A stretch of 64,000 bases of DNA from Hydrolagus colliei (Eukaryota): NCBI GenBank assembly GCA_035084275.1, contig CM068742.1, positions 21,514,001 through 21,578,000 of the forward strand, in the 5' to 3' direction. This document shows, piece after piece, positions 5,571 through 60,710 of this stretch (position 1 is its first letter; each line of letters opens with the position of its first letter). The notes beneath the pieces were generated by a model that was not told where the DNA came from, ran no database searches, and saw only the letters and a program-made list of their open reading frames with translations. The position numbers were made by a program, and so were the translations under genes.

Positions 5571-5907
5571 TATAATATAATCCTTGCATTTCATATAGCG
5601 CTTTTCACATCTTATCAACGTCCAAAAGTGCTTCACAGAATATACTGTAAACTGAATTGACTGTATATTTGTGGGCGAATCGCGGCAGCCAATTAATTGC
5701 ACACAGCAGTGTCCCACAAACAGTCGTGGATTGAAATGACCAATTTTATTATTCTGGTTTTTTTGGATGGTTTATTATTAGGCGTGTGGAGTAAGGAAAC
5801 TTGCCCAAGGTTTCGCCCTGACCTGCCTGGATTCGAACACAGGTCTCCCCAGCTTGGTCTTCCCAGCTTGCAAGACAAGTACTCTAACCACTGAGCCACA
5901 GGAGCTC
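5571..5907 (-). mobile_element. tRNA-derived Deu-domain SINE with L2-like tail
   Basis: Reverse complement starts GGAGCTCCTGTGGCTCAGTGGTTAGAG (A box) ...TGTGTTCGAATCC (B box), then the Deu-like core TGTTTGTGGGACACTGCTGTG...GGCTGCCGCG and a GAAAAGCGCTATATGAAATGCAAGG tail. Confidence 0.88.
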
Positions 5908-10976: not shown

Positions 10977-11280
10977 ATTCTGTAGCTCAGTGGTTACAGC
11001 ACTCGCCTTGCAATCAAGTGAGTTTCAGGCATGGACAAACCTTGGGCAAGTTTCCTTACTCCACACTCCTAATAATAACCCCTCAACAAAATAATAATAA
11101 AAAATTGGTCATTTCAATCCATGACTGTTTGTGGGACACTGCTGTGTGCAATTCGCTGCCGCATTTCACCCACAAATATACAGTGAATTCACTTTACAGT
11201 AAATTCTGTGAAACGCTTTGAGACTTGATAAGATGGAAAAGCGCTGTATCAAATACAAGGATTATTATTATTTTTACAGT
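10977..11280 (+). mobile_element. tRNA/Deu SINE
   Basis: CTGTAGCTCAGTGGTTACAGCACTCGCCTTGCAA head, Deu core and GGATTATTATTA tail. Confidence 0.85.
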
Positions 11281-18084: not shown

Positions 18085-18392
18085 ACACCTGTGGTCACTC
18101 AGAACCCATGACTTGATGATAATCCCTCAAAAAAACAATAATAAATTGTTTTTTTCAATCCATGCCTGTTTGTGGGACACTGCTGTGCACAATTGGCTGC
18201 CACGTTCGCCCACAAATATACAGTTTGTACAAATATACAGTCAAGTTTGTGGGACACTGTTGTGCACAATTGGCTGCCACGTTTCACCCACAAATATACA
18301 GTCAATTCACTTTACAGTATATTCTGTGAAGCGCTTTGAAACATCGATAAAATGTGAAAAGCGCAATTATCAAATGCAAGGATTATTATTAC
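18085..18392 (+). mobile_element. Deu SINE with internal tandem duplication of the Deu core
   Basis: TTTGTGGGACACTG(C/T)TGTGCACAATTGGCTGCCACGTT...CACAAATATACAGT occurs twice (about 18168 and 18246), followed by the standard tail. Confidence 0.82.
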
Positions 18393-21850: not shown

Positions 21851-24038
21851 TAGGGAACGGCGATATGGGATTTTTCCGGATATGGATATATCGGTTTGCT
21901 CATACCTGCTTAAACCGATCTATCGAGTTTTTATACTGCGCATGCGCGTGCATTCGAAGTGCGCGTGCATTGATGGCGCGCGCGCATTTATGGGGCGTCC
22001 GCACCATAAATGCGTCCATCGTCAGTGCGTCTGCACTGACGATGCGCGCGCAGTCGCGGTGCACGCAGATTTCGAAATGCGTGCTCTAGGTCCAGAAAGT
22101 TTGTAATGTTGGTGTCAAGGTCTGTTGAATTATACAATGTTGTTTGCTCCCTACCTCCCCCTCTCCTTCTCTCCCTCCTCTCCTCTCTCCTTCTCTCCCT
22201 CCTCTCCTCTCTCCTTCTNNNNNNNNNNNNNNNNNNNNNNNNNNNNNNNNNNNNNNNNNNNNNNNNNNNNNNNNNNNNNNNNNNNNNNNNNNNNNNNNNN
22301 NNNNNNNNNNNNNNNNNNNNNNNNNNNNNNNNNNNNNNNNNNNNNNNNNNNNNNNNNNNNNNNNNNNNNNNNNNNNNNNNNNNNNNNNNNNNNNNNNNNN
22401 NNNNNNNNNNNNNNNNNNNNNNNNNNNNNNNNNNNNNNNNNNNNNNNNNTCTCCCTCCTTTACCCTCTCATTCTCTCCCTCCCTCTCCTCTCTTCCTCTC
22501 TCCTTCTCTCCCAACTTTCGCCCTCTCCCTCCCTCCCATCTCTCCTTCTCTCCCTCCTTTCCCCTCGCTCCTTCTCTCCCTCCTTTCCCCCTCTCCTTCT
22601 CTCCCTCCCTCCCTCCCTCTCCTCTCTTCCTCTCTCCTTCTCTCCCTCCTTTCCCCTCGCTCCTTCTCTCCCTCCTTTCACCCTCTCCTTCTCTCCCTCC
22701 CTCTTCTCTCTTCCTCTCTCCTTCTCTCCCAACTTTCCCCCTCTCCTTCTCTCCCTCCCTCCCTCCCTCCCCTCTCTCCTTCTCTCCCTCCTTTCCCCCT
22801 CTCCTTCTCTCACTCCCTCCCTCCCCCCTCTCCTTCTCTCCCTCCCTCCCTCCCCTCTCTCCTTCTCTCCCTCCTTTCCCCCTCTCATTCTCTCCCTCCC
22901 TCTCCTCTCTTCCTCTCTCCTTCTCTCCCAACTTTCCCCCTCTCCTTCTCTCACTCCCTCCCTCCCCTCTCTCCTTCTCTCCCTCCTTTCCCCCTCTCAT
23001 TCTCTCCCTCCCTCTCCTCTCTCCTTCTCTCCCAATTTTCCCTCTCTCCTTCTCTCACTCCATCTCTAAACACAAAATAGAACACACACACACCAAAAAC
23101 AAAATCTAGACATTTATTCTCCTCCATTTCTTGCTTGAAACTGTTTCTATGTGTGTGTCTGACTAGACACACACATAGAAGCAGTGATAATCTGGCTTCT
23201 AACTCTCTCACACACAAAAATAACACTTACAGCCACAAAATGCCACTAATGTTTATGTAGTCTGAAGTCTGAATTAATGTCCTTCGCCATTGGCAAGCTC
23301 TCCTTTGCTATGCAAAAAGTGACAGCGTTCGTGATACTTTGCCACTTTTTGTCCCCTCTCTGGTACAATGTTCTCCTCTTAAATAAAGCAGGAATTGTTT
23401 GAGCTGCACTGGCCCCACTACCTGTCGCTTTCTCCGAAGCGCTGGTTCGACTTCCTGCTGTTGTCGACAATAATTTCGCACTGAGGGCAGCGTGCTGGGC
23501 GGGGTGGTGCTGCTTAATGTGATGTCGCAGGTTGCTCGTGCTCGAATCAGATGTCTTAACCAAGACCTTGCAAACTGTACATCTATACACACCATTACTG
23601 ACTGCATTGTTTTCAAAGTAGTCCCATACGGGGCTTCTTTTCCCCATGATGAGAAAGGTAAATTTTCAAACTACAATTTTCAGCGATGCGACTTTGTTAA
23701 GACGCCACGACTCACGTTGAGTATACACAGTAAAGTGTGCGTGCGCATCGGATGTGCGCGCCCGTTAATTGTGCGCGCGCACCGAATGTACGCGCATTCC
23801 ATGCTCTAGATCTAGGAGGTTGCAATGCCGGCGACAAGGTAAGCTGGAAAAGATCGCATTACACTGATAATACCAACAATATTGATATATTGCCAGGAAC
23901 GATATTAAAAATATATCGATGTATATTTTTAAAATCGAATCTCTCGATATAACAGTTTTTTTAGAATCACCATATCGGCATACCGATCTGAAAATCATAT
24001 CGGGTTTAATCGAAAAACCGATTAATCGCCGTTCCCTA
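21851..24038 (-). mobile_element. Internally deleted hAT DNA transposon, copy 1
   Basis: Perfect 14-bp TIR TAGGGAACGGCGAT...ATCGCCGTTCCCTA and exact 8-bp TSD CTATATAC (21843-21850 and 24039-24046). CGAT- and GCGC-rich subterminal repeats, CT-rich minisatellite with N gap 22219-22449, and a BED-finger ORF on the minus strand. Confidence 0.95.
23246..23647 (-). pseudogene. Truncated hAT transposase N-terminus (BED zinc finger), 133-codon ORF
   Basis: MGKRSPVWDYF...YRCTVCK.....SSTSNLRHHIKQHHP is the BED pattern W..F...C..C...TSNL..H...H. It is followed by ITNAVTFCIAKESLP, typical of Ac/ZBED1-like transposases. No DDE catalytic domain follows. Confidence 0.88.
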
Positions 24039-28641: not shown

Positions 28642-30555
28642 TAGGGAACCGCGATATGGGATTTTTCCGGATATGGATATATCGGTTGGCTCATACCTGC
28701 TTAAACCGATCTATCGAGTTTTTATACTGCGCATGCGCGTGTATTCGAAGTGCTCGTGCATTGATGGCGCGCGCATTTATGGTGCGCGCTCAGTCGCGGT
28801 GCACGCGCATTGACGGTGCGTCCGCACTGACGATGCGCGCGCAGTCGCGGTGCACGCACATTTCGAAATGCGTGCTCTAGGTCCAGAAAGTTTGTAATGT
28901 TGGTGTCAAGGTCTGTTGAATTATACGATGTTGTTTGCTCCCTACCTCCCCCTCTCCTTCTCTCCCTCCTCTCTCCTTCTNNNNNNNNNNNNNNNNNNNN
29001 NNNNNNNNNNNNNNNNNNNNNNNNNNNNNNNNNNNNNNNNNNNNNNNNNNNNNNNNNNNNNNNNNNNNNNNNNNNNNNNNNNNNNNNNNNNNNNNNNNNN
29101 NNNNNNNNNNNNNNNNNNNNNNNNNNNNNNNNNNNNNNNNNNNNNNNNNNNNNNNCCTTTCCCCTTGCTCCTTCTCTCCCTCCTTTCCCCCTCTCCTTCT
29201 CTCCCTCCCTTCCCCCTCTCCTCTCTTCCTCTCTCCTTCTCTCCCTCCTTTCCCCTCGCTCCTTCTCTCCCTCCTTTCACCCTCTCCTTCTCTCCCTCCC
29301 TGTTCTCTCTTCCTCGCTCCTTCTCTCCCTCCTTTCCCCCTCTCATTCTCTCCCTCCCCTCTCTCCTTCTCTCCCCCCTTTCCCCTCGCTCCTTCTCTCC
29401 CTCCTTTCCCCCTCTCTTTCTCTCCCTCCCTCTCTCTTCCTCTCTCCTTCTCTCCCAACTCTCCCCCTCTCCTTCTCTCCCTCCATCTCTAAACACAAAA
29501 TAGAACACACACACACCAAAAACAAAATCTAGAGATTTATTCTCCTCCATTTCTTGCTTGAAACTAGCATGTAATGTCCACGTGTAAATGAGATCTATTA
29601 CAATAGAAAAGAGAGAGACAGACAGTCTAACTGTTAGAGTTAGAAGCCAGATTATCACTGTTTCTATGTGTGTGTCTGACTACACACACACATAGAAGCA
29701 GTGATAATCTGGCTTCTAACTCTCTCACACACAAAAATAACACTTACAGCCACAAAATGCCACTTATTCTTATGTAGTCTGAAGTCTGAATTAATGTCCT
29801 TCGCCATTGGCAAGCTCTCCTTTGCTATGCAAAAAATGACAGCGTTCGTGATACTTTGCCACTTTTTGTCCCCTCTCTGGTACAATGTTCTCCTCTTAAA
29901 TAAAGCAGGAATTGTTTGAGCTGCACTGGCCCCACTACCTGTCGCTTTCTCCGAAGCGCTGGTTCGACTTCCTGCTGTTGTCGACAATGATTTCGCTCTG
30001 AGGGCAGCGTGCTGGGCGGGGTGGTGCTGCTTAATGTGTTGTCGCAGGTTGCTCGTGCTCGAATCAGATGTCTTAACCAAGACCTTGCAAACTGTACATC
30101 TATACACACCATTACTGACTGCATTGTTTTCAAAGTAGTCCCATCAGGGGCTTCTTTTCCCCATGATGAGAAAGGTAAATTTTCAAACTACAATTTTCAG
30201 CGATGCGACTTTGTTAAGACGCCACGACTAACGTCGAGTATACACAGTAAAGTGTGCGCGCGCATCGGATGTGCGCGCCCGTTAATTGTGCGCGCGCACC
30301 GAATGTACGCGCATTCCATGCTCTAGGTCCAGGAGGTGGCAATGCCGGCGACAAGGTAAGCTGGAAAAGATCGCATTACACTGATAATACCAACAATATT
30401 GATATATTGCCAGGAACGATATTAAAAATATAACGATGTATATTTTTAAAATCGAATCTCTCGATATAACGGTTTTTTTAGAATCACCATATCGGCATAC
30501 CGATCTGAAAATCATATCGGGTTTAATCGAAAAACTGATACATCGCCGTTCCCTA
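28642..30555 (-). mobile_element. Internally deleted hAT DNA transposon, copy 2
   Basis: TIRs TAGGGAACCGCGAT (one mismatch) and ATCGCCGTTCCCTA, with exact 8-bp TSD CTATGCAT (28634-28641 and 30556-30563). Colinear with copy 1, N gap 28981-29155. The BED ORF has GTA>TGA at codon 7. Confidence 0.95.
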
Positions 30556-33324: not shown

Positions 33325-34500
33325 TTGATGTCTGACAGGCTTGTCGGAGTTTGTAACACTTCCCTCCACATCCAGAACTCTGCAACTCATGTTCTCTACC
33401 ACACCCGGGTCTACGACCCTAATACCCTACCCTCACCCGTCTCCACTGGCACCTCATCCCCCATCCCCAGAGGATGGAGTTCAAAATCCTTGTCCTCGCA
33501 TTCAAAGCCTTTGGCCTTGCTATTTCCTACTTCTGTGACCTGCTAACAACAAACCAACCTGTCTGCTTCCTCCACTCAGCAGACTCCAGCCCACTGCCCG
33601 GCCTCTTCCACCATTGCCGGTTGGGCCTTCAGCCTCTTTGCCACCACACTTTGGAACTCCATCCCACAGTCCCTTTGCGTCGCTCCCACTTTTGCCTCCA
33701 TCAAAGCCCATCTCAAGACCTTAACTTCAACCACACATATGGCCACCCACCCAACTCCTACCCTCCCTGTCTTCCACCTCTTCTGATCACATTCCCCTGC
33801 TTGGGTCCAAATCACTGATTGTCCAGTGGCTTGGTTTGTCCTCCCGACATGAAAAGCACAACAACAACAATGCTGTACAACAATTTGTACAGCACTTTTC
33901 ACGTCAGGAGGACATCCCATGGTACTGAACAATCAGGGGGCAGGACCCAAACATGGTGGGGGGAATGGGGAGGCAGATTTTGGATGAGGGAGTTCAGAGA
34001 GGTAGGAGGCGGTCAAAAAGGAGGGTCTTAAGACAGGCCTTGAAGGGAGCAAGAGAGGGAGCAAGTCAACGGGATTGTGGGATGGAGTTCCAAACAGTGG
34101 GGGCAAAAAGGCTGAAAGGGTGAAAGCCTGGATCGGGTGAGAGACATGGTCGGAGCCTGCTGAATGGAGGGAGTGGACAAACTAAGGGGTCAGAGAGGTA
34201 GGAGGGGCCTTGAAGGTGAGGACGAGGATCTTGAATTCGATCCTCTCGGGAGCCAGTGGAGCTGGGTGAGGGTGGGGGAATTGCAGTTGTGGATCCTGGT
34301 GCATGAGAGGACTTGAGCTGCAGAGTTTTGGATGATCTGCAGCTTGTGGAGGAAAGAGTTGGGGAGGCCGACAAGTAGGAATTTGCTGTAGTTGAGCCTT
34401 CAGGTGACAAACGTGTGTGTGAGGGTTTCTGCACACGTTTCTGCATCCTGAGGGGTGAGGCATTGGCAGAGTCGGGCGATGTTGCAGAGGTGGTAGAAGC
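33325..34500. mobile_element. Two L2 3' fragments in opposite orientation (33325-33900 +, about 33990-34500 -)
   Basis: IQNSA and EFKILVL motifs on each strand, with L2 3' ends at about 33830-33930. Confidence 0.75.
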
Positions 34501-34512
34501 CAATGCTTGTCA

Positions 34513-34842
34513 TAATAATAATAATAATCATTGCATTTGATATAACGCCTTTCACATTTTATCGACTTCTCAAAGCGCTTCACAGAATATACTGTTAAGT
34601 GAATTGACTGTATATAGATTTGTGGGTGAAACGCGGCAGCCAATTGCACACAGTGGTGTCCCACAAACAGTCGTGGATTGAAATGACCAATTTTTAATAT
34701 TGTGGGGTTTTTTTGGACGGATTATTTGGCGTGTGGAGTAAGGAAACTTGCCCAAGGTTTCGTCCTGATCTGCCTGGATTCGAACACAGGTCTCATGCTT
34801 GTAAGGCGAGTGCTCCAACTATTGAGCTACAGGAGCTCCACA
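34513..34842 (-). mobile_element. tRNA/Deu SINE
   Basis: Complete head-core-tail order. Head reverse complement GGAGCTCCTGTAGCTCAATAGTTGGAGCACTCGCCTTACAAG. Confidence 0.88.
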
Positions 34843-34984
34843 TGGCACCGATACAGGGGAGAAAGGACAGTTTCAGGGTCAAACAAGACACACAGGTTCC
34901 TGACTGGCATGGTGAAGTGGATTGTGCATCCATGGATGCTGATGCTGCCATTGTCTGAGGTGTGGAGGCGCAACCTGCACCCTA

Positions 34985-35850
34985 ACCACAACAACAACAA
35001 AATTGCATTTATATAGCGCCTTTTGCATTGGGAGGACGTCCCAAAGCGCTAAACAGTCAGGTTGGGATCCAAGCGCGGGGGTGGAGGCCGGGGGAAGGGG
35101 AAGGAGAGTGGGAGACAGGGAAGAGTTAAGGTGGGGGAGCCAAAGGCGCGGTCGAAGAGGAAAGTCTTGAGACCGGCCTTGAAGTAGGAAAGGGAGGAAG
35201 CAAGGCGGAGGGGTTACGGGATGGAGTTCCGGGTTACGGGATGGAGGCTGAAAGCCCAGCCACCGATGATTGGGCAGTTAGTGCGATGGACGTGGAGCAG
35301 GCCTGAGTCTGCTGAACGGAGGGTGCGGACAGGCTGATAGGGAGACAGCAGGTCAGAGAAATAGGCGGGGCAAGGCCATGAATGGCCTTGAAAGTGAGGA
35401 TGAGGATCTTGAATTCGATCCTCTGGGGGATGGGGAGCCAATGGAGATGGGCGACGGTGGGAGTGATGTTGTCGCGAAGCCTGGGGAGGCCTAGGTGTAC
35501 AGGAGAGTACGCGAGCTGCAGAATTCTGAATGATAAAAGTAGTGGCGGAGTCTGGCAATATTGCGGAGGTGGTGGAAGGCTGTGCCGGTCATGGAGCGAA
35601 TGTGGGGGAGGAAGGATAGTTTGGGGTCAAACAAGATGCCTAGATTCCTGATTGGCTTCGAGAGGTGGAGAGAGCAGCCTTGAACGCTGATGTTGTCAGC
35701 GCCTGAGGTGGGGAGACACTGACATGAGCCAATCAGGAGGGCCTCTGTCTTGTTGACATTGAGCTGTAGGAAATTTGCCCTCATCCAGGACTCAATGTTG
35801 GACAGACATGCAGTCAGAACGCCAGTAGTCCTGGAGTCGAGGGTGTGCGT
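34985..35850 (-). mobile_element. L2-type LINE 3' fragment
   Basis: [36 protein letters not shown] motifs and an (aac)n tail. Confidence 0.88.
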
Positions 35851-35859
35851 GGAGACCCC

Positions 35860-36630
35860 TGACTCGAACCCTAACCCTAACCCCCAACCCGCACTCTAAC
35901 CCTAATGAGAACCCTAACCATAACCTCCATCCAGAAACCTATTCCCCCAAACCTTTCTCCCACACAAAAAAATATATTCTTACTTAAGGAAAGAAGCAAA
36001 CCCAAACGAAATTTGACAAAACCCCAGCACAGGGCGTTATCAGGAAAATACGAGCCACGTAAATCAAGATCCCCAAAATTTATAAAACCTAACTCCTGCG
36101 AGTGCCATGAATGTTTCTCTATGAAAAAACCCAAACCAGTAAACACAGAAATTTTTTTCAAGCACATGGCTGTTACTGTGATTATAAAGCTGGTCTAGTT
36201 TGAGAAAATCATTTGTGCTGCCAGACAAAATGGGATCACAAATTGAGAGAGGGCAAGGATTGAATGTGAACCTAGGCCTACATTCCCAACCTAGGAAAGC
36301 AAAGGCAAAAACAAACTCCAAAAAAACAGAAAAAGTGCACATCAAGAACCCTTCCTAAAACTAACAAAACTAACGCAGGGCTGCTCAAAAAATTAAACGA
36401 AACTAAACTTAAAAAACATAAAACCAAATTCCGGAATAAACACACAAATGCCAGCAGATATAATTGGAGCGAATAGAATATAATTTAATAAATGAAAACC
36501 CAAGCAGACAATTCACAGCAAATACCCTAGACAGGCTAAATAGTTTAGCCTTTAAACATTAGAATAAAACAATGGCCAACAAAAGAATACACGGAGAGAG
36601 GGCCATTAGCACTCAAACACACTAAACACA
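35860..36630 (+). mobile_element. Penelope-like element, upstream 5'-truncated unit: CCCTAA tract plus collapsed ORF2 (RT N-terminus and GIY-YIG remnant)
   Basis: Frameshifted motifs in the expected order: PNLS (about 35948), FIKPNS(C)E resembling PF.PKS.WEP (about 36079), PDKMGSQI resembling PADKGS.I (about 36220), KCQQI(Y)IG resembling C...YIG (about 36447), LE*N.W and KRIHGER.IS resembling QRR.AER.WI (about 36560-36610). Highly degenerate. Confidence 0.55.
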
Positions 36631-37829
36631 TTCTATGATTCTACGACATAGATTTTTAGATTCATAGAATTTTACGGCACAAAAGGAGGCCATTCGGCCC
36701 ATCTAGTCTGTGCCGGCTCTTTGAAAAGAGCAATTCAATCCGACTGCCCTGCCCGCTCCCCATAGCCTAATAGACCTGTTCTCCCTAAATAAAGATCTAA
36801 TTCCCTTTTAAAAGTTGTTATCGAATCAGCCTCCACCACCTTTTCAGGCAATGCATTCCAGATTCGAACAACTCGCTGAATGAAAAAATTTCTCCTCAGC
36901 TCCCCTCTACTTCGCCTTGAAACTATTTTAAATCTGTGACCACGAGTCACAGATTCGCCCACGAGTGCGAAATAGTTTTTCTCTATTTGCCCTGTCGAAA
37001 CCCCTCATGATCTTATAAACCTCTATTAGGTCTCCCCTCAATCTTCTCTGCTCCAGAGAAAATAACCCTAGCCTATCTAGCCTCTCCTCATAGCTGAAGT
37101 CCCTCAATCCTGGCACCATCCTAGTAAATCTTCTTTGTACCCTTTCCAATGTCTTCACATCCTTTCTGTAGTGTGGTGACCAGAATTGAACACAGTATTC
37201 CAGCTGAGGCCTCACCAAAGTTTTATAAAGGTTAGTCAGCACTTCCTGACTTTTGTACACTATACCCCTATTTATAAAGCCTAGTATCCCATATGCCTTC
37301 TTAACAGCCTTGTCTACCTGTCCTGCCACCTTCAACGAGTCACTAACACAAATCACCAGGTCTCTCTGTTCCTTCACACCATTTAAAATTGTACTATCTA
37401 GCCTATATTGCCTCCCTTCATTTCTTCTCCCAAAATGCATCACCTCACACTTCTCCGCATTAAACTTCATCTGCCATGTGTCTGCCCACTTTACCAATTT
37501 GTCTATATCCTCTTGCAGATGGCTACTATCCTCCTCACTATTTACTATTCTCCCTAACTTAGTGTCATCTGCAAACTTGGAAACTGTACTCCCTACACCC
37601 AAGTCCAGATCATTGATGTAGATTACAAAGAGCAGTGGTCTCAAAACCGATCCCTGTGGCACACCACTGCTCACTTCCCTCCAGTCTGAAAAACAGCCGC
37701 TCACTACAACTCTCTGCTTTCTGTCTCGCAGCCAGTTGTGGATCCACTCTGCCACTGTCCCTTTTACGCCGTGGGCCTTTAATTTCCTAATAAGTCTCTC
37801 ATGTGGCACTTTGTCAAATGCCTTTTGTA
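36631..37829 (-). mobile_element. CR1-type LINE, 5'-truncated, RT C-terminal half with a 293-codon open frame
   Basis: VPQGSVL, FVIYINDL, SKFADDTKL, LYKTLVRPQLEYCVQFWSP, RGDLIEVYKI and a (ttctatga)-type tail at 36631-36670. Inserted into the Penelope-like element. Confidence 0.94.
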
Positions 37830-37895
37830 GACAGTCTCTCTTTTGTTGCCCACAGATATAACTTGAAACTTCCCTCCAAAGAGAAACTTAAAAAT

Positions 37896-37934
37896 CTCTT
37901 TGAAAAAGCCACAGGAATTGGTGAAACATCGGAG
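37896..37934 (+). ncRNA. Minimal type I hammerhead ribozyme motif (degenerate) at the Penelope pLTR position
   Basis: CTCT-TTGAAAA-A-GCCA[CAGGAAT]TGGT-GAAA-CATC-GGAG. Stem I CTCT/GGAG, stem II GCCA/TGGT, GAAA box intact. CUGANGA reads UUGAAAA, and GAAACGTC reads GAAACATC. Confidence 0.6.
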
Positions 37935-37949
37935 GAGATACTTTTAGCC

Positions 37950-38860
37950 TTCCAGTTCGGAAAGCACCCCAAACCCCAGAGAGTCATGCTCCCCCTCCCC
38001 TGCTCTTCCCCCTTTTCTTTCTCTCCCTCTCTCTCTTTCTCGATTTTTCTCAGCCTTTTTTTTAGTTCCCTGGGCAGATAAGCACCGGAAAGCACAGAGT
38101 GGTAGGCTGAGAAACTGGGACCTTCGGATCCCCAAACAAAGCTCCAGCCAGAGGCCCAATCTCCCGGGGTAATCCCACTTCCCTTTTCTTTCTACACCTT
38201 TCTACACCCCACCTTCCAAAGCAACATGGTGCAGACTCCATGCAGATTGCAAAAACGCAACCGAACATACCCGAGTGAGGCAGGTGGGCCCCAAAATAAC
38301 ACACACGGGGACGCATTTACAAGGGCAGTCAGGGCCTTTTTTAAACTGATCCACATATATCATCACTTAATTTTTTTAAACAGTAATCCCGAACCCCCAA
38401 AAGGGATTCAAAACCAGGTAGAAAAGTTGACTGAGTTTGTTAAACCAGCCATACCGTCAGAAGGAACTCTCTGTAAATTGGCCAAAAATACAGCGATGTG
38501 GGCAAAATAGACCCGCAATATCCTAATCAAACATTATAAGATTAACATAATTGAACTAAATAATGGAATCAGGTCAATTGGACTAATAGCCCGAAAGGAA
38601 GAGACCTTCACAGTGGCATTCTCCTGGACAAGGAAAGCCCTAAAACAAAAATTTTAAATGTCGACCGCAGATCGGACAAGGCAGCACATTTTTTAAATTA
38701 GCAGAGCAGAAACCCCCCCACATAATAATAACACCCCAACTAACAATAATTTCAATAACACCAAATTTAACAACACCCCCACTAAGCGTACTCCCACCCC
38801 CACTCCCTGCAGTAAGAACTCTCCCGTCCCGACTAGACACAAATGGAATTCACTCCAATG
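37950..38860 (+). mobile_element. Penelope-like element, downstream unit: 5' region and ORF1 N-terminal part
   Basis: Frame 38226-38640: FKLIHIYHH...PPKGI...LTEFVKPAIPSEGT...N.A.WAK*TRNILIKHY. This resembles the upstream-ORF N-terminus I recall from fish Penelope-type elements (recalled, not searched). A P/N/T-rich linker follows. Confidence 0.6.
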
Positions 38861-38959
38861 TGTCTGTACACTTGCACCTAGATATTGGACCGGCGGCATC
38901 TCAACCGCCGACAGTGACGGTAGGTGCTTGGGGTGTAGCGAGAGCCCCTAGGACAATAC

Positions 38960-39810
38960 AGGCTAACTCCACACCCTTCCTCTCCCACCGACTTCACTTA
39001 GTCTCCTCCAACGGCTTCTCTTCCAGCCCCTGCACAGTCACATGCGGCGTTCCCCAGGGTTCTGTCCTTGGCCCCCTGCTCTTCACCCTCTCCACTCTCC
39101 CCCTGGGCGACATCATCCACAGACATGGGTAAATTTCCACATGTATGCGGATGACACCCAACTCTACTTATCCGCGTCAACCCTCGATTCCAGGATCACT
39201 GGTGTTCTGACTGCATGTCTGTCCGACATTGAGTCGTAGACGAGGGCAAATTTCCGACAACTCAATGTCAACAAGATGGAAGCCCTCCTGATTGGCTCAC
39301 GTCAGTGCCTCCACACCTCAGGCGCTGATAACATCAGCGTCCAAGGCTGTTCTCTCCACCTCTCGAAGCCAATCAGGAATCTGGGCATCTTGTTTGACCT
39401 CGAACTAACCTTCCTCCCCCACATCCGCTCTGTGACCAGCACAGCCTTCCATCACCTCCGCAATATTGCCAGAGTCCCCCATTACCTCACCCCCCACATC
39501 CATGCCTTTATCACTTCAAGGCTCGACTATGGGAACTCTCTCCTCATCGGCCTCACCAGCTCTTCGCTTCACAGGCTGCAGATCATTCAGAATTCTGCAG
39601 CTCATATACACTCCCGTACCAGGCTTCGCAACCACATCACTACCACCCTCGCCTGTCTCCACTGGCTCCCTGTCACCCAGAGGATCGAAGTCAAGATCCT
39701 CATCCTCACTTTCAAGGCCATTCACGGCCTTGCCCCCGCCTATTTCTCTGACCTGCTGTCTCCCTATCAGCCTGCCCGCACCCTCCGTTCAGCAGACTCA
39801 GGCTTGCTCC
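38960..39810 (+). mobile_element. L2-type LINE RT fragment inserted in the Penelope-like ORF1
   Basis: [47 protein letters not shown]. Confidence 0.9.
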
Positions 39811-40228
39811 GTGGGCGAAACGCGGCAGCCAAATTGCGCACAGCAGTGTCCCATAAACAGTTGCAGATATGGGGCCAGAGGAGAAAGGGGGAAAAGAAGG
39901 CGGGGGGGGAGAGGGAGAGGAAGGGAAAGGTGGTGTAGAGCAAAGTCAGGGAGGAAGAGGGGGAGAGAAAGGGGGGGGCAAAGGAGAGAGGGAGGGAAAG
40001 GTGGATGGGGGGCAAAATCAAAGGGAAAAGGGGCCAAGAGGAAGAGAAGGGGAAAAGGGGGAAGAGAAAGTGGGGAAAGGGAGTGCGGGAAGAAGATGGG
40101 GGCGGGGGAAGCCCAGGGAGCAAGGGGGGGATCAAACAACAACAATAAACAACAAAATCAACAACAATAAACAACAAAAGCAACAATATTAACAATAAAA
40201 TCAATAACAATCGACAACTAACAATAAT
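39811..40228 (-). repeat. Deu-SINE core fragment, GA-rich tract and (AAC)n tract
   Basis: GTGGGCGAAACGCGGCAGCCAAATTGCGCACAGCAGTGTCCC, then a purine-rich block (39870-40130) and (aac/aat)n (40133-40228). Confidence 0.75.
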
Positions 40229-40489
40229 CCAGTTCCTTCTCCCCGCCGCCTGCCCGGACGGTCTTCAAAACTGCGGGAAACAGAGCCCAGTGTGGTGAGA
40301 GGCCCCAAAACCTACTGGCTCCTCAGCTGGTGTACCTGGTGACTTGGTGACGGCCCTGGTACCTCGGACACGGCTTGTCTGGCCAGCTCGCACAGCAGCA
40401 GCAGCAGCAGCCTGATTGCCGGTCACAGGATCAGGGATGGAGATGGGAATTTCTCCCCTCCATGCCCAACAGGGAATTGATAAGAACTG

Positions 40490-40970
40490 ATCAAAAAATT
40501 AAATACAGTAACTGTCCACAAAAGGACAGATCGTAAAAATGCAGACGGGATATTAAAACCCTCAAAACCAGTCATAATAATTGGGGACAAAAACCTCACA
40601 ATAACAGGTTGTCCAAATGCACACACACAGGAGCAGGCCTTTCCAGAGGCAAACTTCCATCATGTGCATAAAATGTTAAAACAAAATCAAACCCTGTGAG
40701 GAGATCAGGCAGGACATTTTCTCCCTCGGTTTCCACAACCTGGGTCAGCAACCAAAGACTGCCATTAAATAATTGAAGGCTATGTTAAAAAGGGCCAGGC
40801 AAGGTTTCCCCAAAGTAGAAATCCTTGTCTCAGAAAGTAATTTTAGCCACAATTTAAACAAAAAAGAAAGGACTACCTTAGAGGAAGTCAATACATTTAT
40901 TGAAAAGACAAGATTAAAAACAATAACACCCAATGGATTAAATTCCTAGTAAAATAGTTAAACAGGGAAG
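40490..40970 (+). pseudogene. SGNH/GDSL-esterase-like ORF1 C-terminal domain of the Penelope-like element
   Basis: VTVHKRTDRKNADGILKPSKPVIIIGDKNL (block I, IIGDSN-like), QAFPEANFHHV (SFPGA-like), then after a frameshift IFSLGFHN (block III), KTAIK*LKAML..A...FPKVEILVSE.NFS.NL...E...L..VNTFI. Contains stops. Confidence 0.65.
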
Positions 40971-41014
40971 CCGACAAAAATAAATCCCGACCGCAACTCT
41001 AAAATCCAGCCCCC

Positions 41015-41514
41015 AACACGAACCCCAACCCTAGCCCTAACCCTAACATAAACCCCAACCCTAACCCTACACCCCAACTGGAAACCTAACCCCTAACCCC
41101 AAATCCTAACTCCCAAACCGAACCCTAACCCTTAACGTGAACCCTAATATGACCCCTAATCCTCGTCCCGAAACCTATCCCCCCCCAAACCTTTCTCCCT
41201 CACAAAAAAAATATCCTTACTTAAGGAAAGAAGCAAACACATTCATGAGCCCAAACGAAATTTGACAAAACCCCAGCCCAGGGGATTATCGGGAAAACAC
41301 AAGACAAGTGTATCATGATCCCCAAAATTTATAAAACCTAACCCTAACCCTTAGGATGGCGTGAAAACTTTTACCAATACCAACACCAATACCCTAACTC
41401 TAACCCTAACTAACTCTAATCCTAAGGATGGATACTAACCCTAAGGACTCCCTAATCCTAATCCTAACCCTAAGAATGGAAACCCTAACCCTAAGGATGG
41501 AAACCATAACCCTA
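41015..41514 (+). repeat. Degenerate (CCCTAA)n-like tracts flanking a Penelope ORF2 N-terminal fragment
   Basis: Tracts at about 41015-41160 and 41337-41514. The intervening 41172-41342 is a direct repeat of 35938-36092 (CCAAACCTTTCTCCC...CCCCAAAATTTATAAAACCTAAC). Confidence 0.85.
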
Positions 41515-42440
41515 GGTGGAGTATGCATCCATGGATGCTGATGCTGCCATTGTCTGAGGTGCAGGTGTGAGCCAATCAGGAGGGCCTTGTTCTTGCTGAC
41601 GTTCAGCTGTAGAAAGTTGTCTCTCATCCAGGACTTGATGTCTGACAGGCAGTCTGTCAAGACATCAGTAGTCCTGGAATTGAGGGTGGAGACAGAGATA
41701 GAGTTGGGTGTCATTCGCGTACATGTGGAAATTTACCTTATGTCTCTGGATAATGTCACCCAAGCATATAGAGGTTAAAGAGGAGGGGACCGAGAACAGG
41801 GCCCTGAGGAACACCTGAGCAAAAGATGGTGTGGGGGCTGAAAGAGAAACAGTTGGCAGAGACAATGTGTGAGATAGATACGACATGAACCAGTCAACGA
41901 CAGAACCTTGAAGGTTGAGGTGAAAGGAGAGACAGTGGAGGAGGATTGACTGGTCCATGGTGTCAAAGGCGGCAGAGAGGTTGAGGAGGATGAGGGAACA
42001 GAGGGAGCCCTGGTCACAGATGGACAGGATGTCATTTGTCAACTTGACTACGGCTGTTTCCGTGCAATTACAGGTGTTCGTAAAGAGAGTGGCCAGGGGG
42101 GAAGGAGTGAAGCTGGGAAGCAAAAACCCTTTCAAGGACTTGACCAGAGCAGTTTCCGTACTGTGAGCTGTACAGATTCCCTCAATTTTGGACTCAAGGA
42201 GATCCAGAATCTCCTCACAATCAAAATCAGAGGAGGGAATAGGCAAAGCATGGGGAGGTCGACAGAGGAGCCGGTTGTATTGTGGAGAATAGGAGTCTGG
42301 GGTTGCCATTTGTCTCCCAAGACAATTGGACGGAGTGGGAGGAGAGGAAAGAGCAAAGCTGGGAAGCAACGACTCTTTCAAGGACCTTAGGAAGAAAAGG
42401 CAGGTTGGAAATGTGCGGTAATTGGAGAGCAGGGATGCAT
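41515..42440 (-). mobile_element. L2-type LINE derivative with internal deletions
   Basis: HSTETALVK / TETAVVKLTNDIL, LLNLSAAFDTMD, YANDTQLYL, RDNFLQLN. Confidence 0.82.
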
Positions 42441-42467
42441 CCAGGAAAGTTTTCTTCAGGATATGGG

Positions 42468-42965
42468 TTATTGTGGAGTCCTGTACCTCAGTGTTTAGAA
42501 CACTTGACCTGCAAGCGAGAGACCTGGGTTTGATTCCAGGCAGGGCAAAACCTTGGGCAACTTATGTTACTCCACTTGTCTAACTACAATAATAAAATTG
42601 GTCATTTCAAACCACGACTGTTTGTGGGAAACTTGCTGTGTGCAATTGCCTGCTGCGTTTCACCCACAAATATACAATCAATTCACTTTACAGTATATTT
42701 AGTGAATCGCTTTCAGATGTCTAGAAGACTATATCAAATTCAAGGATTATTATTATTATTATTAATAGTAATCCCTGAAAAAAACAATAATAAATTGATC
42801 ATTTCAATCCACGACTGTTTGTGGGACACTGCTGTGCACAATTGGCTGCTGCATTTCACCCACAAAATATACAGTCTATATACTTTACAGAATTCTGTGA
42901 AGGGCTTTGAGACATCTAGAAAATGTGAAAACTGCTATATCAAATGCAAGGATTATTATTATTGT
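42468..42965 (+). mobile_element. Two tandem tRNA/Deu SINEs
   Basis: Head GGAGTCCTGTACCTCAGTG...GGGTTTGATTCC, two Deu cores and two GGATTATTATT tails. Confidence 0.82.
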
Positions 42966-42974
42966 GGGTGTTTT

Positions 42975-44060
42975 GAATCAGATGGGAACGGTACTGGATG
43001 ATAGGGAGAGATTAATGTTGTCGGAGAGTAGGTGGGGGGTAGGGTGCAAGGAGTTAGAGCTGGGAGGTGATTAGAGGGGTGGCAATGGGGTCAAGGGATC
43101 AGGTAGTGGGCTTCATAGGCGATGGGTAGGGGTCAGAGTATAGGGCAGAGATGGGGATGGATTAGCAGTTGGGAGGGCAGAGGCAGCTGAACAGATTCCC
43201 TGAATTGTGGACTTGAGGAAATCCAGCATCTCCTCACAATGAGTTAGAGGAGAGAATAGGCGATGTTTGAGGGGGTGGATGAAGGAGCCAGTTGGTTGTG
43301 GAGAATAGGAGCCTGGGGTTGCCCGGCACCTCCAAGAAGGACAATTTGGTGGAGGTGAGAGCAGAGCGATCAGTTTTGATGTGATCCAAACAGATATGCC
43401 AGTGGACCATTAGGTCAGATTTGAGGTAGCTGGTGAACCAAGGTGAGGTTCATGATTAGGAAGTAGTTTGGCGAAGTGAGGGGGCAAGGAATCGGGGGTA
43501 GTGGAGAGGGTAGTATGTAGGAGAGTATGTGAGAAGGACAGGTCGGTGCTAGATTTAGGCCAGAGGGGGAGGAGTTCAGATCGACTCCAGGACTGCATAG
43601 AGGGATTGTGGGGATATTTTCTTCCAGGGACAGTAGAGGATGGAGGTGCATTTGGTGGAGATGGGAAGAGGGATTGAGGAGTTAAAGGAGATGAAGTGGT
43701 GGTCGGAGATGGCCTTGTCAGTGACGGTGATATCCAAGACACTACGGCCCCAGGTGATCACCAGGTTGAGTGGGTGGCCATGAAGGTAGGTGGCGGAGTG
43801 GATGTGGAGGGAGAGGTTGAGAGAGGAGAGAAGAGTAGAGAGGGGAAGTCTGAGGAGATCGAGTAGGAAGGGGATGAAGTGAAGGTTGTAGTCGCTAAGG
43901 ACGAAGAGGTAATCGGAACAGAGGCAGAGGGAAGTTAGGAGGGTGGAGATAGCGATGATGAAAGTGGGGAGATTTGGGGGATTTTGAGGGATAGATTTGA
44001 GGGACACACCAGCGCCACGGTAGCGGCCAAAAGGTTATACAAGTGTAATTTGTTGTTATT
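42975..44060 (-). mobile_element. L2-type LINE endonuclease region
   Basis: Minus frame with GRYRGAGV, LSDYNLH (GDFN-like), ATYLHGHPLNLVIT, ISDHHFI. Confidence 0.78.
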
Positions 44061-44589: not shown

Positions 44590-45990
44590 CACCTTGTGTC
44601 CACTCTTTCCTCTCAAACCACTCACTCCTCGAACCCCTCCGATCGGTTTCCGTGCTTCCCACAGCACAAAAACTGCTCTGGGCAAGGTCACAAATTACAT
44701 CCTGACCATCTGTGACCAGGGCTCCCTCTGCCTCCTTGTCCTCCTCGACCTATCTGCTGCCTTCAACACCATAGACCACACAATCCTCCTCCACCGCCTC
44801 TCCTCCCTCCTCAACCTTCAAGGCTCTTTCCTTGACTGGTTCCAATCATATCTCTCCCACCGCCTTCACTTCGTCTCTTCCAACGGCTTTTCCTCCAGCT
44901 CCCGCACTGTCACATGCAGCATTCCCCAGGGCTCTGTCCTTGGCACCCCCTGCTCTTCACCATCTGTATGCTCCTGGGTGACATCATCCGCAGACATGGG
45001 GTAAATTTCCACAGGTATGCGGATGACACCCAACTCTACCTTTCTGCACCCACCCTCAACTCCAGGATTACTAGTGTCCTGACTGCATGTCTGTCCAACA
45101 TTGAGTCCTGGACGAGGGCCAACTTCCTCCAACTGAACGTCAATAAGATGGAGGCTCTCCTGATTGGCTCGCGTCAGCGCTTCCATACCTCAGGCGCTTA
45201 CAACATCAGCATTCAAGGCTGCTCTCTCCACCTCTCGAAGCCAGTCAGGAATCTGGGCGTCTTGTTTGACCACAAACTGTCCTTCCTCCTTCATATTTGC
45301 TCCATGACCGGTCCAGCCTACCACCACCTCCACAATATTGCCAGACCCCGCCACTACCTCAACCCCCCACACTGCTGAAACACTTATACACGCCTTTGTC
45401 ACATCGAGGCTCGACTACGAGAACTCTCTCCTTGTCGGCCTTCCCAGCTCCTCTCTTCACAGGCTGCAGAACATTCAGAACTCTGCAGTTCGTATACTCT
45501 CCCGCAGTAGGCTCCACGACCACATCACTCTCACCCTAGCCCATCTCCACTGGCTCCCCATCCCCCAGAGGATCAAATTCAAGATCCTCGTCCTTACCTT
45601 CAAGGCCATTCACGGACTTGTCCCCGCCTATCTGACCTGCTGTCTCCCTATCAGCCTGCCCGCTCCGCTCAGCAGACTCTGGTTTGCTCCGCGTCCACCG
45701 CCCTAACTGCCAAACCATCGGTGGCCAAGCTTTCAGCCTCTCTGGCCCCACACTCTGGAACTCCATTCCGTAATCCCTTTGCCTCACCTCCTCCTTTTCC
45801 TCCTTCAAGGCCGGTCTCAAGACCTTCCTCTTCGACTGCGCCTTTGGCTCCCCTCCTAACTCTTCTCCCTCTCCTATTCTCCTTCTCCCTACCCCAACTC
45901 TCCCTCCCCCTGCTCGGGTCCTGACCTGATTGTTCAGCGCCTCCTGACATGAAAGGTGCTCTATAAATGTAATTTTGTTGTTGTTAGCCA
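44590..45990 (+). mobile_element. L2-type LINE RT to 3' end
   Basis: [51 protein letters not shown] and a (ttg)n tail at about 45975. Confidence 0.92.
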
Positions 45991-54759: not shown

Positions 54760-55345
54760 ATCACATCCCTCCCCCCACCCCTCTTCTTCCCTCACTCCCT
54801 TTCCCCACTTTCTCTCCCCCCCTTTCTCCCCTTCCCTCCCTCTTCCCTCTTACCCCCCTTCCTCCCTGATCTTGCCCCCACCCACCTTTCCCTCCCTCTC
54901 TCCCTTACCACCCTTTCTCCCTCCTCTTCCTCCCTGACTTTACCCTACCCCACCTTTCCCTCCCCTTGCCCTCTTTTCCCCCTTTCTCCCCTAGTCCCAT
55001 TTCCAAGACTTTGTGGGACAATGCTGTGCACAATTTGGCTGCCGTGTTTCGCCCACAAATATACAGTATTCTTTTCTGCTCTCCTTCCCCCTACCCCGAC
55101 CCCACCCCTTGCCACCTTTCCCCTCCTTTTCCCCAAATTCCACTTCCATGAATGTTTGTAGGACACTGCTGTGCGCAATTTGACTGCTGTGTTTCGCCAA
55201 CAAATATACAGTCAATTTTCCTACTCTTCTTCATCCTGCCCCGAAACCTCCCCCACTGCTCTTGTCCCTACCTGACTGTACAGCGCCTTGGGACATCATC
55301 TCGATGTGAAAGGCGCTATATAAATGTAAGCTTTGATTGATTGAT
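54760..55345 (+). mobile_element. CT-rich / double Deu-core SINE variant with alternative L2 tail
   Basis: Pyrimidine tract, Deu cores at about 55010 and 55155, then CCTACCTGACTGTACAGCGCCTTGGGAC...GAAAGGCGCTATATAAATGTAAGC(TTGA)n. Confidence 0.7.
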
Positions 55346-56059: not shown

Positions 56060-57355
56060 GCCAGCAAGGTTAATAAAGGACAACAAGCACAGATTTGCTA
56101 AAGGCAAATCTTGCCTGACGAATCTGATAGAATTTTTTGATGAGGTAATGGAATGGGTGGAAGAGGGTAGTGCAGTCGATGTAGTTGATATGGACTTTCA
56201 AAAGGCATTTGACAAAGTGCCACCTGAAAGGCTTATAAAGGAAATAAAGACCCACGGCGTAAAAGGGACAGTGGCAGCATGGATCCAGAACTGGCAGGGA
56301 GACAGAAAGCAGAGTGTTGTGGTGAACGGCTGCTTTTTTGACTGGGGGAATTGTATGGTGGCGTCCCTGAGGGATCAGGACTACTGTTCTTTTTAATTTA
56401 TATTAATGATCTGGACTTGGGTATAGGGAATACCATTTTGAAGTTTGCAGATGACACAAAGTTAGGAAAAATAGTAAATAGTGTGGAGGATAGTAGACAT
56501 CAGCAAGAAGATGTAGACCAAATGGTAAAATGGGCAGACACATGGCAGTTGAAGTTTAATGTAGAGAAATGTGAGGTGATGCATTTTGGGAGGAGAAATG
56601 ATGGGAGGCAATATAGGCTCGGTAGTGCAATTTTAACGGGTGTGAAGGAACAGAGAGACCTGGGGGTTTGTGTGAGTGATTCTTTGAAGGTGGCAGGACA
56701 GGTAGACAAGGCTATCAAAAAGCATACGGGATACTAGGCTTTATAAATATGAGCATAGAGTACAAAAGTCAGGAAGTTCTAACAAAACTCTGTAAAACTT
56801 TGGTTAGGCCTCAGCTAGAGTACTGTGTATGATTCTGGACACTACACTTTAGGAAGGATGTAAAGGCATTGGAAAGGGTGCAGAGGAGATTTACTAGGAT
56901 TGTATCAGGAATGAGGGACTTCAGCTATGAGGAAAGGCTAGAGAGGCTAGATTTATTCTCATTGGAACAGAGAAGGTTGCAAGGAGACCTAATAGATGTT
57001 TTTAAGATCATGAGGGGATTCGACAGAGTAGGAGGGAAAAACTGTTTCAACTGGTGGGCGTATCAGTGACTCATGGTCACAGATTTAAAATAGTTTCAAA
57101 AAGAAACAGAGGAGATGAGGAGAAATGTTTTCACCCAGCAAGTTGTTCAAATCTGGAATGCATTGCCTGAAAAGGTAGTGGAGGCCGATTGGATAACAAC
57201 TTTTAAAATAGAGGTAGACGTTTATTTTGGGAGGACGGGTGTGCACGGTTATGGAGAGAGAGCTGCGGAGTGGGATTAAATTGCCCTTTGTAAATAGCCG
57301 GCAGACTTGATGGGCCGAATCGCTTCCTTTTGTGCCATAAGATTTCATGATTCTA
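56060..57355 (+). mobile_element. CR1-type LINE RT to 3' end
   Basis: GKSCLTNLIEFFD, MDFQKAFDKVP, KFADDTKL, QRRFTRIV, GDLIDVFKI and a ttctaaga tail. Confidence 0.92.
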
Positions 57356-57867
57356 AGAAGGGATTTCTCTGTCTTACCATTCTCTAGCATTAGATGGTGA
57401 TAACCAGACCTAGGGACTGAGGAATAAAATTACTGTCATGGGATTTAGTCTTTATTGATATCAACACAGGACAAGGAATAAAAACCTATTTGTCACTTAT
57501 AACACAACACTGAGGAAAAGCTTTTGAGTTGTGACACAAGGCTTTGTTGTTGTTCTTGTTGAAAAGTAAGATTTTGTACAGTGAATATTGTCCTCACTTT
57601 CAAGGCCATCCCCGCCCATCTCTCTGACCGTGCCTTCTGCTGCCCTCCTAACTCTCCCCTGGGAATCCCAGAGGGATCCACCCTGTTTTTATCCAGGGAA
57701 TAAGTGGTTTCCTGCCAGGTTTAAACTGTAGATTTCCATCCCTGGCCCCAGCTGTCAGTGTAACCTGTGTCATTTTTATCAAAGGATGGAATGTCTCTGT
57801 GTATATTTAATATTAGAGAGCACATGGCTGAGTGTGTTGCACTGGGAGCCAACAATTCACAGCAACA

Positions 57868-59518: not shown

Positions 59519-60710
59519 GAGGGTAGTGCAGTTGATGTAGTTTATATGGACTTTTGAAACGCATTTGACAAAGTGCCACATGAAAGGCTTATAAAGAAAA
59601 TAGAGACCCACGGCGTAAAAGGGACAGTGGCAGCATGGATCCAGAACTGGCTGGGAGACAGAAAGCAGAGTGTTGTGGTGAACGGCTGCTTTTCCAACTG
59701 GAGGGAAGTGTACAGTGGCGTCCCCGAGGGATTGGTATTAGGACCACTGCTCTTTTTAATTTATATTGCTGCTCTGGACTTGGGTATAGGGAGTACCATT
59801 TCCAAGTTTGCAGATGACACAAAGTTAGGAAAACTAGTAAATAGTGAGGAGGATAGTAGTCATCTGCAAGAAGATAGAGATGGAATGGTAAAATGGGCAG
59901 ATGAAGTTTAATATAGAGAAATATGAGGAGAAATGAAGGGAGGCAATATAGGCTCGGTAGTGCAATTAAGGTGTGTGAAGGAACAGAGAGACCTGGGGGT
60001 TTGTGTGAGTAATTCTTTGAAGGTGGCAGGACAGGTAGACAAGGCTATCAAAAAAGCATACGGAACACTAGGCTTTATAAATATGGGCATAGAGTACAAA
60101 AGTCAGGAAGTTCTAACTAAACTCTATAAAACTTTGGTTAGACCTCAGCTAGAGTCCTGTGTACAATACTGGTCACCACACTTCAGGAAGGATGTTAAGG
60201 CATTGGAAAGGGTGCAGAGGAGATTTACTAGGATGGTACCAGGAATGAGCGACTTCAGCTATTAGGAAAGTCTTGAAAGGCTAGATTTATTCTGATTGGA
60301 ACAGAGAAGGTTGCAAGGAGACCTAATAGATGTTTTTAAGATCATGAGGGGATTCGACAGAGTAGGTAGGGAAAAACTGTTTCAACTGGTGGGCGTATCA
60401 GTGATTCGTGCTCACAGATTTAAAATAGTTTCAAAAAGAAGCAGAGGGGAGATGAGGAGAAACTTTTTCACCCAGCGAGTTGTTCGAATCTGGAATGCAT
60501 TGCCTGAAAAGGTAGTGGAGGTCAATTCAATAACAACTTTTAAAAGAGAGGTAGACATTTATATGGGGAGGATCGGTTTGCGAGGTTATGGGCAGAGAGT
60601 TGGGGAGTGGGATTGAATTGCTCTTTTTATAGAGCTGGCACAGATTTGAAGGGCTGAATGGCCTCCTTTTGTGCCGTAAGATTCTATGATTCTATGATTC
60701 TATTCTATGA
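59519..60710 (+). mobile_element. CR1-type LINE RT to 3' end, same subfamily as 56060-57355 and 36631-37829
   Basis: SKFADDTKL, LYKTLVRPQLESCVQYWSP, RNFFTQRVVRIWNALP and a (ttctatga)n tail at about 60682-60708. Confidence 0.92.

Follow-up and report, generated by a model that had tools for sequence, protein, structure and literature searches.

We analysed a window of 64,000 nucleotides from Hydrolagus colliei (contig CM068742.1, assembly GCA_035084275.1, positions 21,514,001 to 21,578,000 of the forward strand). The block at positions 34963-41513 of this window is very likely one complete insertion of a non-autonomous derivative of a Penelope-like element (PLE) with two open reading frames (ORFs). 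The derivative has no reverse transcriptase (RT) and was inserted into an old L2 sequence. The copy is dead, with stops, frameshifts and three nested insertions. Read in this way, an apparent mosaic of about 6.6 kb resolves into one dead PLE-derived insertion and three later insertions of long or short interspersed nuclear elements (LINEs, SINEs). Coordinates of all features are collected in Table 1.

Insertion site and terminal repeats

The limits of the element are set by a target-site duplication (TSD) of 48 nt found on both sides. The target is an old minus-strand L2 copy that is interrupted by the element. Its left piece occupies 34841-34962, its right piece resumes at 41514, and the two pieces overlap in L2 coordinates solely across the duplicated stretch. 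A TSD at an interstitial copy indicates endonuclease-type integration. A single TSD of about 180 bp, formed by both L2 flanks, was considered and rejected, because the left L2 is a separate, younger copy. The original prediction had started the element at 35860; the TSD moves the start to 34963, and the nested L2 at 34991-35856 had been missed.

After in silico removal of the three nested inserts, the host element is 3119 nt long. Its plus strand is A/C-rich, in agreement with the composition described originally. The order of its parts is a CCCTAA-like tract, a direct repeat R, a leader of about 0.9 kb, ORF1, a second CCCTAA tract, a second copy of the repeat (R') and a CCCTAA-like tail. The surrounding sequence is repeat-dense vertebrate DNA.

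The pattern CCCTAACCCTAA (at most one mismatch) has 16 matches in the window. All of them are on the plus strand within 35869-41494, that is, inside the element, against 0.32 expected by chance. The direct repeat extends over 35869-36093 and 41098-41342, with 91% identity in the ungapped columns of its core. The tract and the repeat together form units at 35857-36093 and 40990-41342 resembling pseudo-long terminal repeats (pseudo-LTRs), which gives the element the direct terminal repeats of a PLE. Both the one-stranded tracts and the direct repeat had been noticed in the original prediction and are confirmed here. The terminal repeats and the TSD copies have diverged by 6-9%.

ORF1 and its linkage to Penelope-type ORF2

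An exhaustive search with the 71-residue translation of 40484-40696 produced three true relatives of 422-617 residues. A word search with the alignment of these three then yielded 87 members of the ORF1 family. The named members are "uncharacterized proteins" of teleosts, with the exception of one protein from a "Cetobacterium" bin and one wolffish protein with an automatic kinase-like name. The former (P0010) is deposited as a protein of a "Cetobacterium sp." metagenome-assembled genome; it is almost certainly fish host DNA that was binned with a gut bacterium, because the distribution of the family is otherwise restricted to fishes.

Profile hidden Markov models (HMMs) of the family were run on the window translated in six frames, 3064 stop-free pieces in all. 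The only matches are in this element, and the best E-value among reversed-sequence controls is 2.3. Searches of the window by tblastn with the ORF1 proteins of three relatives (L001, L004, L005) gave E-values from 1e-13 to 7e-9. The N-terminal fragment and the SGNH-like stretch, with the motifs IIIGDKN and SLGFHN, had been proposed as parts of one ORF1, and both indeed match a real protein family. Judging by the profile matches, they are two domains of a single predicted ORF1 split by the third nested insertion, because the matches are colinear and far exceed the controls. Taken separately, the pieces were less informative. Ten stop-free pieces of the element had no match in Pfam. A word-index protein search with the N-terminal and SGNH pieces, whose length filter excluded full ORF1 proteins, had no match. 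The search of the ESM Atlas with both ORF1 pieces returned nothing usable, and phmmer comparison of single ORF1 pieces with PDB returned nothing relevant.

The N-domain of the relatives, whose counterpart in the window is 38319-38654, is confidently modelled as a domain of five helices (confidence score pLDDT 92.6). The HH, P, L, HY and A positions of this domain are invariant, and a W is nearly invariant. The model has no PDB fold match at E<=0.001, and the domain has no Pfam family.

The C-domain of the family has the SGNH/GDSL flavodoxin-like fold. PF13472 (Lipase_GDSL_2) is matched by 52 of 81 family C-domains and OSK by six. The best profile match in PDB is 4c1b, the esterase of ZfL2-1 ORF1 (E 1e-5). 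An AlphaFold model of the domain has a pLDDT of 96.9, and its top Foldseek matches are platelet-activating factor (PAF) acetylhydrolases (PAF-AH), sialate O-acetylesterases, thioesterase I (TAP) and ZfL2-1. The pieces from the window match the family HMM and are, on their own, below Pfam detection.

The catalytic residues are well kept in the family (Ser in 79, Gly in 78, Asn in 67 and His in 76 of 81 sequences). In the window copy, Ser, Gly and Asn are substituted. Block I reads GDKN, where the catalytic Ser of GDS has been replaced by two base changes. The oxyanion-hole residues are changed as well, Gly to Glu in block II (FPEANF) and Asn to His in block III (GFHN). A Trp that is invariant in the family is also replaced. 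The last 40 or so profile positions (140-178), including block V with its Asp-x-x-His, are undetectable in the window with the family HMM. A block V candidate selected by eye (DKIK...QW...LN, 40904-40963) scored below zero with this HMM and was rejected. The ORF1 of the source element was probably already non-catalytic, because Ser, Gly, Asn and Trp are all replaced while the repeats and the TSD differ by just 6-9%.

The relatives come from metagenome and Logan contigs (L001, L003, L004, L006, L010, L011) and from fish chromosomes (L009, L012-L016); the metagenome scan gave three loci only. For L012-L016, stop-free frames were used and spliced gene models were left unjoined. Directly downstream of ORF1, an ORF2 with IKPADKG, YLDD, RVT_1 and GIY-YIG was found in L001, L003, L004, L006 and L009-L016. 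These ORF2s are 611-798 residues long, as stop-free frames, and occur in every relative with enough flanking sequence. Pfam analysis of four of them (L004, L006, L009, L012) found GIY-YIG above the cut-off in all four and RVT_1 with E<=2e-5 in three. No APE-type ORF2, as in CR1 or L2, was observed beside an ORF1 of this family; all linked ORF2s are PLE-type. Thus intact copies combining the SGNH ORF1, RT and GIY-YIG, which the original prediction had proposed to look for, do exist in the loci of other fishes, and homologues of the gene that remains in the window are linked to a Penelope-type RT and nuclease. The findings that would have refuted the original prediction were thus not made, since the segment also matches an SGNH profile and does not come from the ORF1 of a CR1 or L2.

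Hammerhead ribozymes of the relatives were identified with a descriptor that demands, besides the CUGANGA...GAAA core and a cleavage base, helices I and II and a helix III that is palindromic. Of the 14 loci scanned, L012 alone has no match; each of the other 13 carries exactly one minimal hammerhead per unit, with a perfect core, on the upstream side of ORF1. Helix II shows covariation (GCC/GGC, GCA/UGC, GAC/GUC). The structures are of the minimal, dimeric type that Cervera and de la Pena described for PLEs (PMC4209133). Rfam release 15 (E<=1-5) misses the genuine hammerheads of L001, L003, L004 and L006, and no hammerhead was reported by Rfam in any of eight relative loci.

The units are arranged in head-to-tail arrays in L006, L010 and L013/L014. 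The order in the relatives is a telomere-like tract, a hammerhead-bearing leader, ORF1, ORF2, a 3' region and again a tract (L009, L006, L003). CCCTAA-type repeats were found in L003, L006 (a variant), L009, L012 and L016, and next to the hammerhead only in L009. The window copy keeps this order minus ORF2 and its 3' region, and its second unit ends after R'. Segment X1 of the leader sits where the relatives have a leader of 0.8-1.5 kb; it has no match to Pfam, to ORF2 HMMs or to loci of other species.

No significant match to a PLE-type RT, either in the IKPADKG region or in the RT core, was found in the window by ORF2 tblastn or with ORF2 HMMs. These HMMs were built from three and from 12 relatives in full-length and N-terminal-only versions. 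The same searches found no significant GIY-YIG match in the window; the only weak matches are ORFs elsewhere that resemble BED fingers. Two near-identical BED-zinc-finger-like ORFs (...VYRCTVCKVLVKTSDSSTSNLRHHIKQHHPAQH...) lie at 23246-23647 and 29664-30107, both on the minus strand. Each adjoins a GA-rich array with an assembly gap (22086-23000 and 28877-29458, with runs of N at 22219-22449 and 28981-29155), which suggests that some 6.4-6.8 kb were duplicated locally.

The hammerhead motif of the original prediction found no support. Rfam (E<=10) gave none in 34000-43000, the element does not contain the core pattern, and the descriptor had no match on the element even when as many as three mismatches in the core were tolerated (0.15 expected in shuffled sequences). 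Two candidates had been suggested by eye, a "decayed hammerhead" at 38070-38160 and a CTAATGA...GAAAC motif immediately after the CCCTAA tract (35903-35941 and 41152-41181). They were not counted, because neither helix I nor helix II can form.

Nested insertions and alternative explanations

Three later LINE/SINE insertions are nested in the element. The L2 of the first one is 87-90% identical to other L2 copies of the window and 74% identical to the old L2 flank. The sequence CCCTAACC is present at both edges of this insert, so the L2 landed inside the left CCCTAA tract. The second, the CR1 insert of the original prediction, is confirmed. It contains an ORF of 293 residues with an RVT_1 match (Pfam, E 1.7e-17) and is 82-84% identical to copies at 56199-57359 and 59557-60703. 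The third, predicted as L2/SINE, was likewise recovered and consists, at about 38976-40227, of an L2 fragment and a second repeat. The L2 fragment is on the plus strand, is 83% identical to 44852-45691 and has a hint of RVT_1. The second repeat carries GA-rich and AAC-rich arrays, and its part 39811-40107 is 79% identical to 54771-55056. A motif of about 50 nt encoding "...CLWDTAV..." at 39811-39861 recurs about ten times in the window, on both strands and with 86-90% identity (for instance, at 5671-5724, 11124-11173, 18166-18213 and 42814-42863). The motif probably represents a core that is conserved among SINEs of one family.

Table 1. Coordinates of the element, its components and nested repeats in the window, and of related loci
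Feature	Position	Strand	Remarks
TSD, left copy	34915-34962		old minus-strand L2 sequence; 45/48 identical to 41514-41561
Left terminal segment	34963-34990	+	17 unique bases, then CCCTAACCA; between TSD and nested-L2 tail; read directly
Nested insertion 1	34991-35856	-	young 5'-truncated L2 fragment, (TTG)n tail; within left CCCTAA tract
Left telomere-like (CCCTAA)n tract	35857-35925	+	degenerate; TRF period 6, 9.7 copies; pattern search
R, left terminal direct repeat	35926-36093	+	pseudo-LTR-like with tract; repeat of 41148-41342
Leader X1	36094-36630	+	A-rich, non-coding, upstream of ORF1
Nested insertion 2	36631-37829	-	CR1-like 5'-truncated LINE: C-terminal half of RT and 3' end
Leader X2	37830-38225	+	includes CT-rich low-complexity stretch; holds the hammerhead site proposed earlier, unsupported
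N-domain HMM match	38106-38507	+	E 2.9e-16, profile 2-66
ORF1 start and helical N-domain	38226-38654	+	single frame, in-frame stop 38508-38510; family N-domain HMM
N-domain HMM match	38511-38654	+	E 5e-5, profile 70-111
ORF1 linker, first part	38655-38860	+	A/C-rich, low complexity; between the domains; linker variable in family
Nested insertion(s) 3	38861-40227		38861-38975; L2 fragment 38976-39811; second repeat 39811-40227
Second part of linker or foreign DNA	40228-40483	+	higher G content than elsewhere in the element; no other copy in window
ORF1 SGNH/GDSL-like C-domain	40484-40946	+	three pieces; frame shift near 40690, stop 40770-40772
C-domain HMM match	40484-40696	+	E 3.9e-13, profile 2-64
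C-domain HMM match	40680-40769	+	E 0.78, colinear, profile 62-91
C-domain HMM match	40773-40946	+	E 2.1e-8, profile 94-139
Internal/right telomere-like (CCCTAA)n tract	40990-41147	+	directly after ORF1; TRF period 6, 18 copies
R', right terminal direct repeat	41148-41342	+	direct-repeat comparison with R
Terminal tract, right element end	41343-41513	+	CCCTAA units interleaved with AGGATGG-type units; TRF period 21 and 16 arrays; adjoins right TSD
TSD, right copy	41514-41561		45/48 identical to 34915-34962
Hammerheads of relatives	L001:458-487, L003:4189-4225, L004:223-259, L006:612-645, L010:4057-4086, L013:5831-5861		descriptor
L009	Paramisgurnus dabryanus CM084872.1 4275-21942		4-22 kb of 31.9 Mb
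L012	Channa argus CM065111.1		last 13.7 kb
L013/L014	Corythoichthys intestinalis CM059168.1		9-31 kb
L015	Misgurnus anguillicaudatus CM050771.2		13-26 kb from end

The insertion of an RT-less PLE derivative is most simply explained as follows. The template would have been a transcript that covered more than a single unit of a head-to-tail array lacking ORF2, which would account for the terminal direct repeats. The RT and nuclease of an autonomous relative would then have copied it in trans. Indeed, PLE pseudo-LTRs are known to suffice for moving unrelated cargo in trans, with TSDs (Arkhipova et al., PMC3846280).

Several points weigh against our reading of the block as a whole. Firstly, the TSD of 48 bp is longer than published PLE TSDs, which are 8-10 bp in Adineta vaga (PMC3846280). 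Secondly, the PLE nature of the copy rests on ORF1 homology and architecture, because the copy itself has no detectable RT, endonuclease or hammerhead, and its ORF1 is 35-45% identical to the teleost relatives. Thirdly, the 64 kb of this genome examined here revealed no autonomous partner. Finally, the view that ORF1 was non-catalytic in the source element assumes that repeat and TSD divergence measures age, and gene conversion between the repeats could make it an underestimate.

The original prediction had described the block differently, as a full PLE with two ORFs, present in partial tandem, in which ORF2 has collapsed in situ. R and R' would then be the start of ORF2, and the sequence at 35938-36630 would hold relics of the RT N-terminus and GIY-YIG, accompanied by the hammerhead. 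We consider this unlikely. In its favour, R/R' occupies the position of ORF2 in the relatives, just past the ORF1 stop. A stop-free piece of 105 residues from R (35881-36195) can be aligned with residues 106-168 of the L001 ORF2 (NLTKxQxRAL...IKP), with a Smith-Waterman score reached by four of 500 shuffled sequences, this being one of 30 alignments compared. R is also the top of all 3064 pieces for the N-terminal ORF2 HMM, and R' meets the same profile positions. However, the corresponding E-values are 4.7 and 40, whereas reversed controls reach 1.8. Because the match of R is no better than these controls and was picked from 30 comparisons, the origin of R from the ORF2 start is a doubtful hint. 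Comparison of the leader, R and the linker with all relative loci by blastn and tblastx gave only noise; the lone tblastx match (E 0.013) is in an antisense frame and is not colinear with the Smith-Waterman alignment. The tblastn and HMM searches with ORF2 did no better than the reversed controls on the supposed RT N-terminus and GIY-YIG remnant, and the window has no signal of GIY-YIG or of the RT core and no hammerhead. The succession of tract, leader and ORF1 in the relatives places the sequence after the CCCTAA tract in the 5' leader, and not in ORF2.

Another possibility is that there is no single element, and that unrelated fragments, interstitial telomere-like repeats and an SGNH pseudogene of the host have come together in the block by chance. 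The region is a dense pile-up of repeats, and several teleost homologues are annotated as host genes ("uncharacterized protein LOC..."). However, these annotated "genes" lie in tandem PLE arrays with ORF2. The TSD brackets the block exactly, a CCCTAA tract precedes each terminal direct repeat, and every telomere-like dimer of the window falls in the block, on one strand. A chance origin is therefore very unlikely.

That the esterase ORF is a CR1/L2-type LINE ORF1 lying beside telomere-like repeats by accident is largely refuted and hardly credible: CR1 and L2 fragments are plentiful in the window, with two inside the block, and the nearest solved structure by profile is that of a CR1-clade ORF1 (ZfL2-1), but the relatives with flanking sequence have the PLE ORF2 and hammerhead and never an APE-type ORF2, the N-domain is likewise common to these PLE ORF1s, and the LINE sequences nested in the block either lie on other strands or represent RT fragments that have boundaries of their own.

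Known elements and relatives at chromosome ends

As an RT-less derivative of a PLE with an esterase ORF1, the window copy belongs to a known class and is unexceptional within it. PLEs with an esterase ORF1 are on record from a sponge (Neptune1_Ren) and from Takifugu (BRIDGE1_FR) (Schneider et al. 2013, PMC3905857), and so the lineage presented as new in the original prediction had already been published. The proposed lineage itself stands, with its ORF1 family always linked to a PLE ORF2, whereas the window copy is not a two-ORF element. Compared by published layout, Neptune1_Ren and BRIDGE1_FR resemble L001, L004, L006 and L009-L016 in having the SGNH ORF1 upstream of the PLE RT/GIY-YIG ORF. 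The window copy differs from them in the absence of ORF2, in the substituted Ser, Gly and Asn, and in the undetectable block V His. CCCTAA tracts such as those of the window element are unmentioned in PMC3905857.

The family resembles ZfL2-1 (4c1b) in having the SGNH flavodoxin-like fold as the C-terminal domain of a retrotransposon ORF1, preceded by a helical N-terminal region. Unlike ZfL2-1, its partner ORF2 encodes a PLE RT with GIY-YIG rather than APE and RT, and its N-domain, which consists of five helices and matches nothing in PDB, is not a demonstrated coiled coil.

Two known systems are close to the window copy. One comprises RT-less PLE derivatives mobilised in trans, such as Pen3a of Adineta vaga, which is flanked by pseudo-LTRs and carries a non-ribosomal peptide synthetase gene (PMC3846280); the other comprises the non-LTR retrozymes (bioRxiv 10.64898/2026.07.22.740005). 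All have direct terminal repeats around a cargo other than RT, a TSD, and a dependence on an autonomous PLE. In contrast to these systems, the cargo in the window is the element's own ORF1, the TSD is 48 and not 8-10 bp, no hammerhead survives, and the repeats start with telomere-like tracts.

Reverse-complement telomeric repeats on the sense strand are shared by the window element with Athena, Coprina and Terminons, which are endonuclease-deficient, telomere-attached PLEs (Gladyshev and Arkhipova 2007, summarised in PMC8557442). The giant, Athena-related Terminons also appear, from the available text of PMC5408684, to carry GDSL esterase ORFs. Unlike Athena and Coprina, the relatives encode an intact GIY-YIG, and the window copy is interstitial with a TSD, so that the endonuclease is not absent from this lineage.

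Five family proteins are on chromosome-scale fish records. Four of the five lie no more than about 31 kb from the end of a chromosome, and in each of these the sense strand of ORF1 is directed inward, with the 5' end outward. The remaining one, in Oncorhynchus keta, is 0.46 Mb from the end and in the opposite orientation. L009 and L012 are situated amid satellite arrays that contain (CCCTAA)n and have periods of 1394 and 875 nt. In L009 (7102-7242), 8 nt separate the end of a perfect (CCCTAA)17 run from a perfect minimal hammerhead at 7212-7242, which precedes ORF1 by about 760 nt. Such pairing of a tract with a ribozyme has been described for the endonuclease-less telomeric PLEs (PMC8557442), yet the ORF2 of L009 keeps GIY-YIG.

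This pattern is a lead and not a result. Tentatively, the window copy might be an interstitial offshoot of a GIY-YIG PLE lineage spread through cartilaginous and bony fishes and living mainly at chromosome ends. In such a lineage, the RNA of a unit would carry a (CCCUAA)n tail at its end, in L009 immediately before the hammerhead that would cut it. With this tail the RNA could prime at the G-overhangs of telomeres, like that of Athena and Coprina, which lack an endonuclease, and ORF1-only, RT-less derivatives would then spread in trans. The literature searched, which did not cover Repbase or Dfam, contains no description of an end-dwelling GIY-YIG PLE lineage.

If the window copy is what we propose, the esterase-ORF1 lineage of PLEs, known from fugu and sponge, extends to cartilaginous fish, and an ORF1-only, RT-less form of it has been copied at least once with a clean TSD. 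If the lineage does live at chromosome ends, it would be a vertebrate counterpart of the telomere-attached PLEs. If confirmed, this would have a bearing on the switch of PLEs between integration primed at telomeres and integration mediated by an endonuclease.

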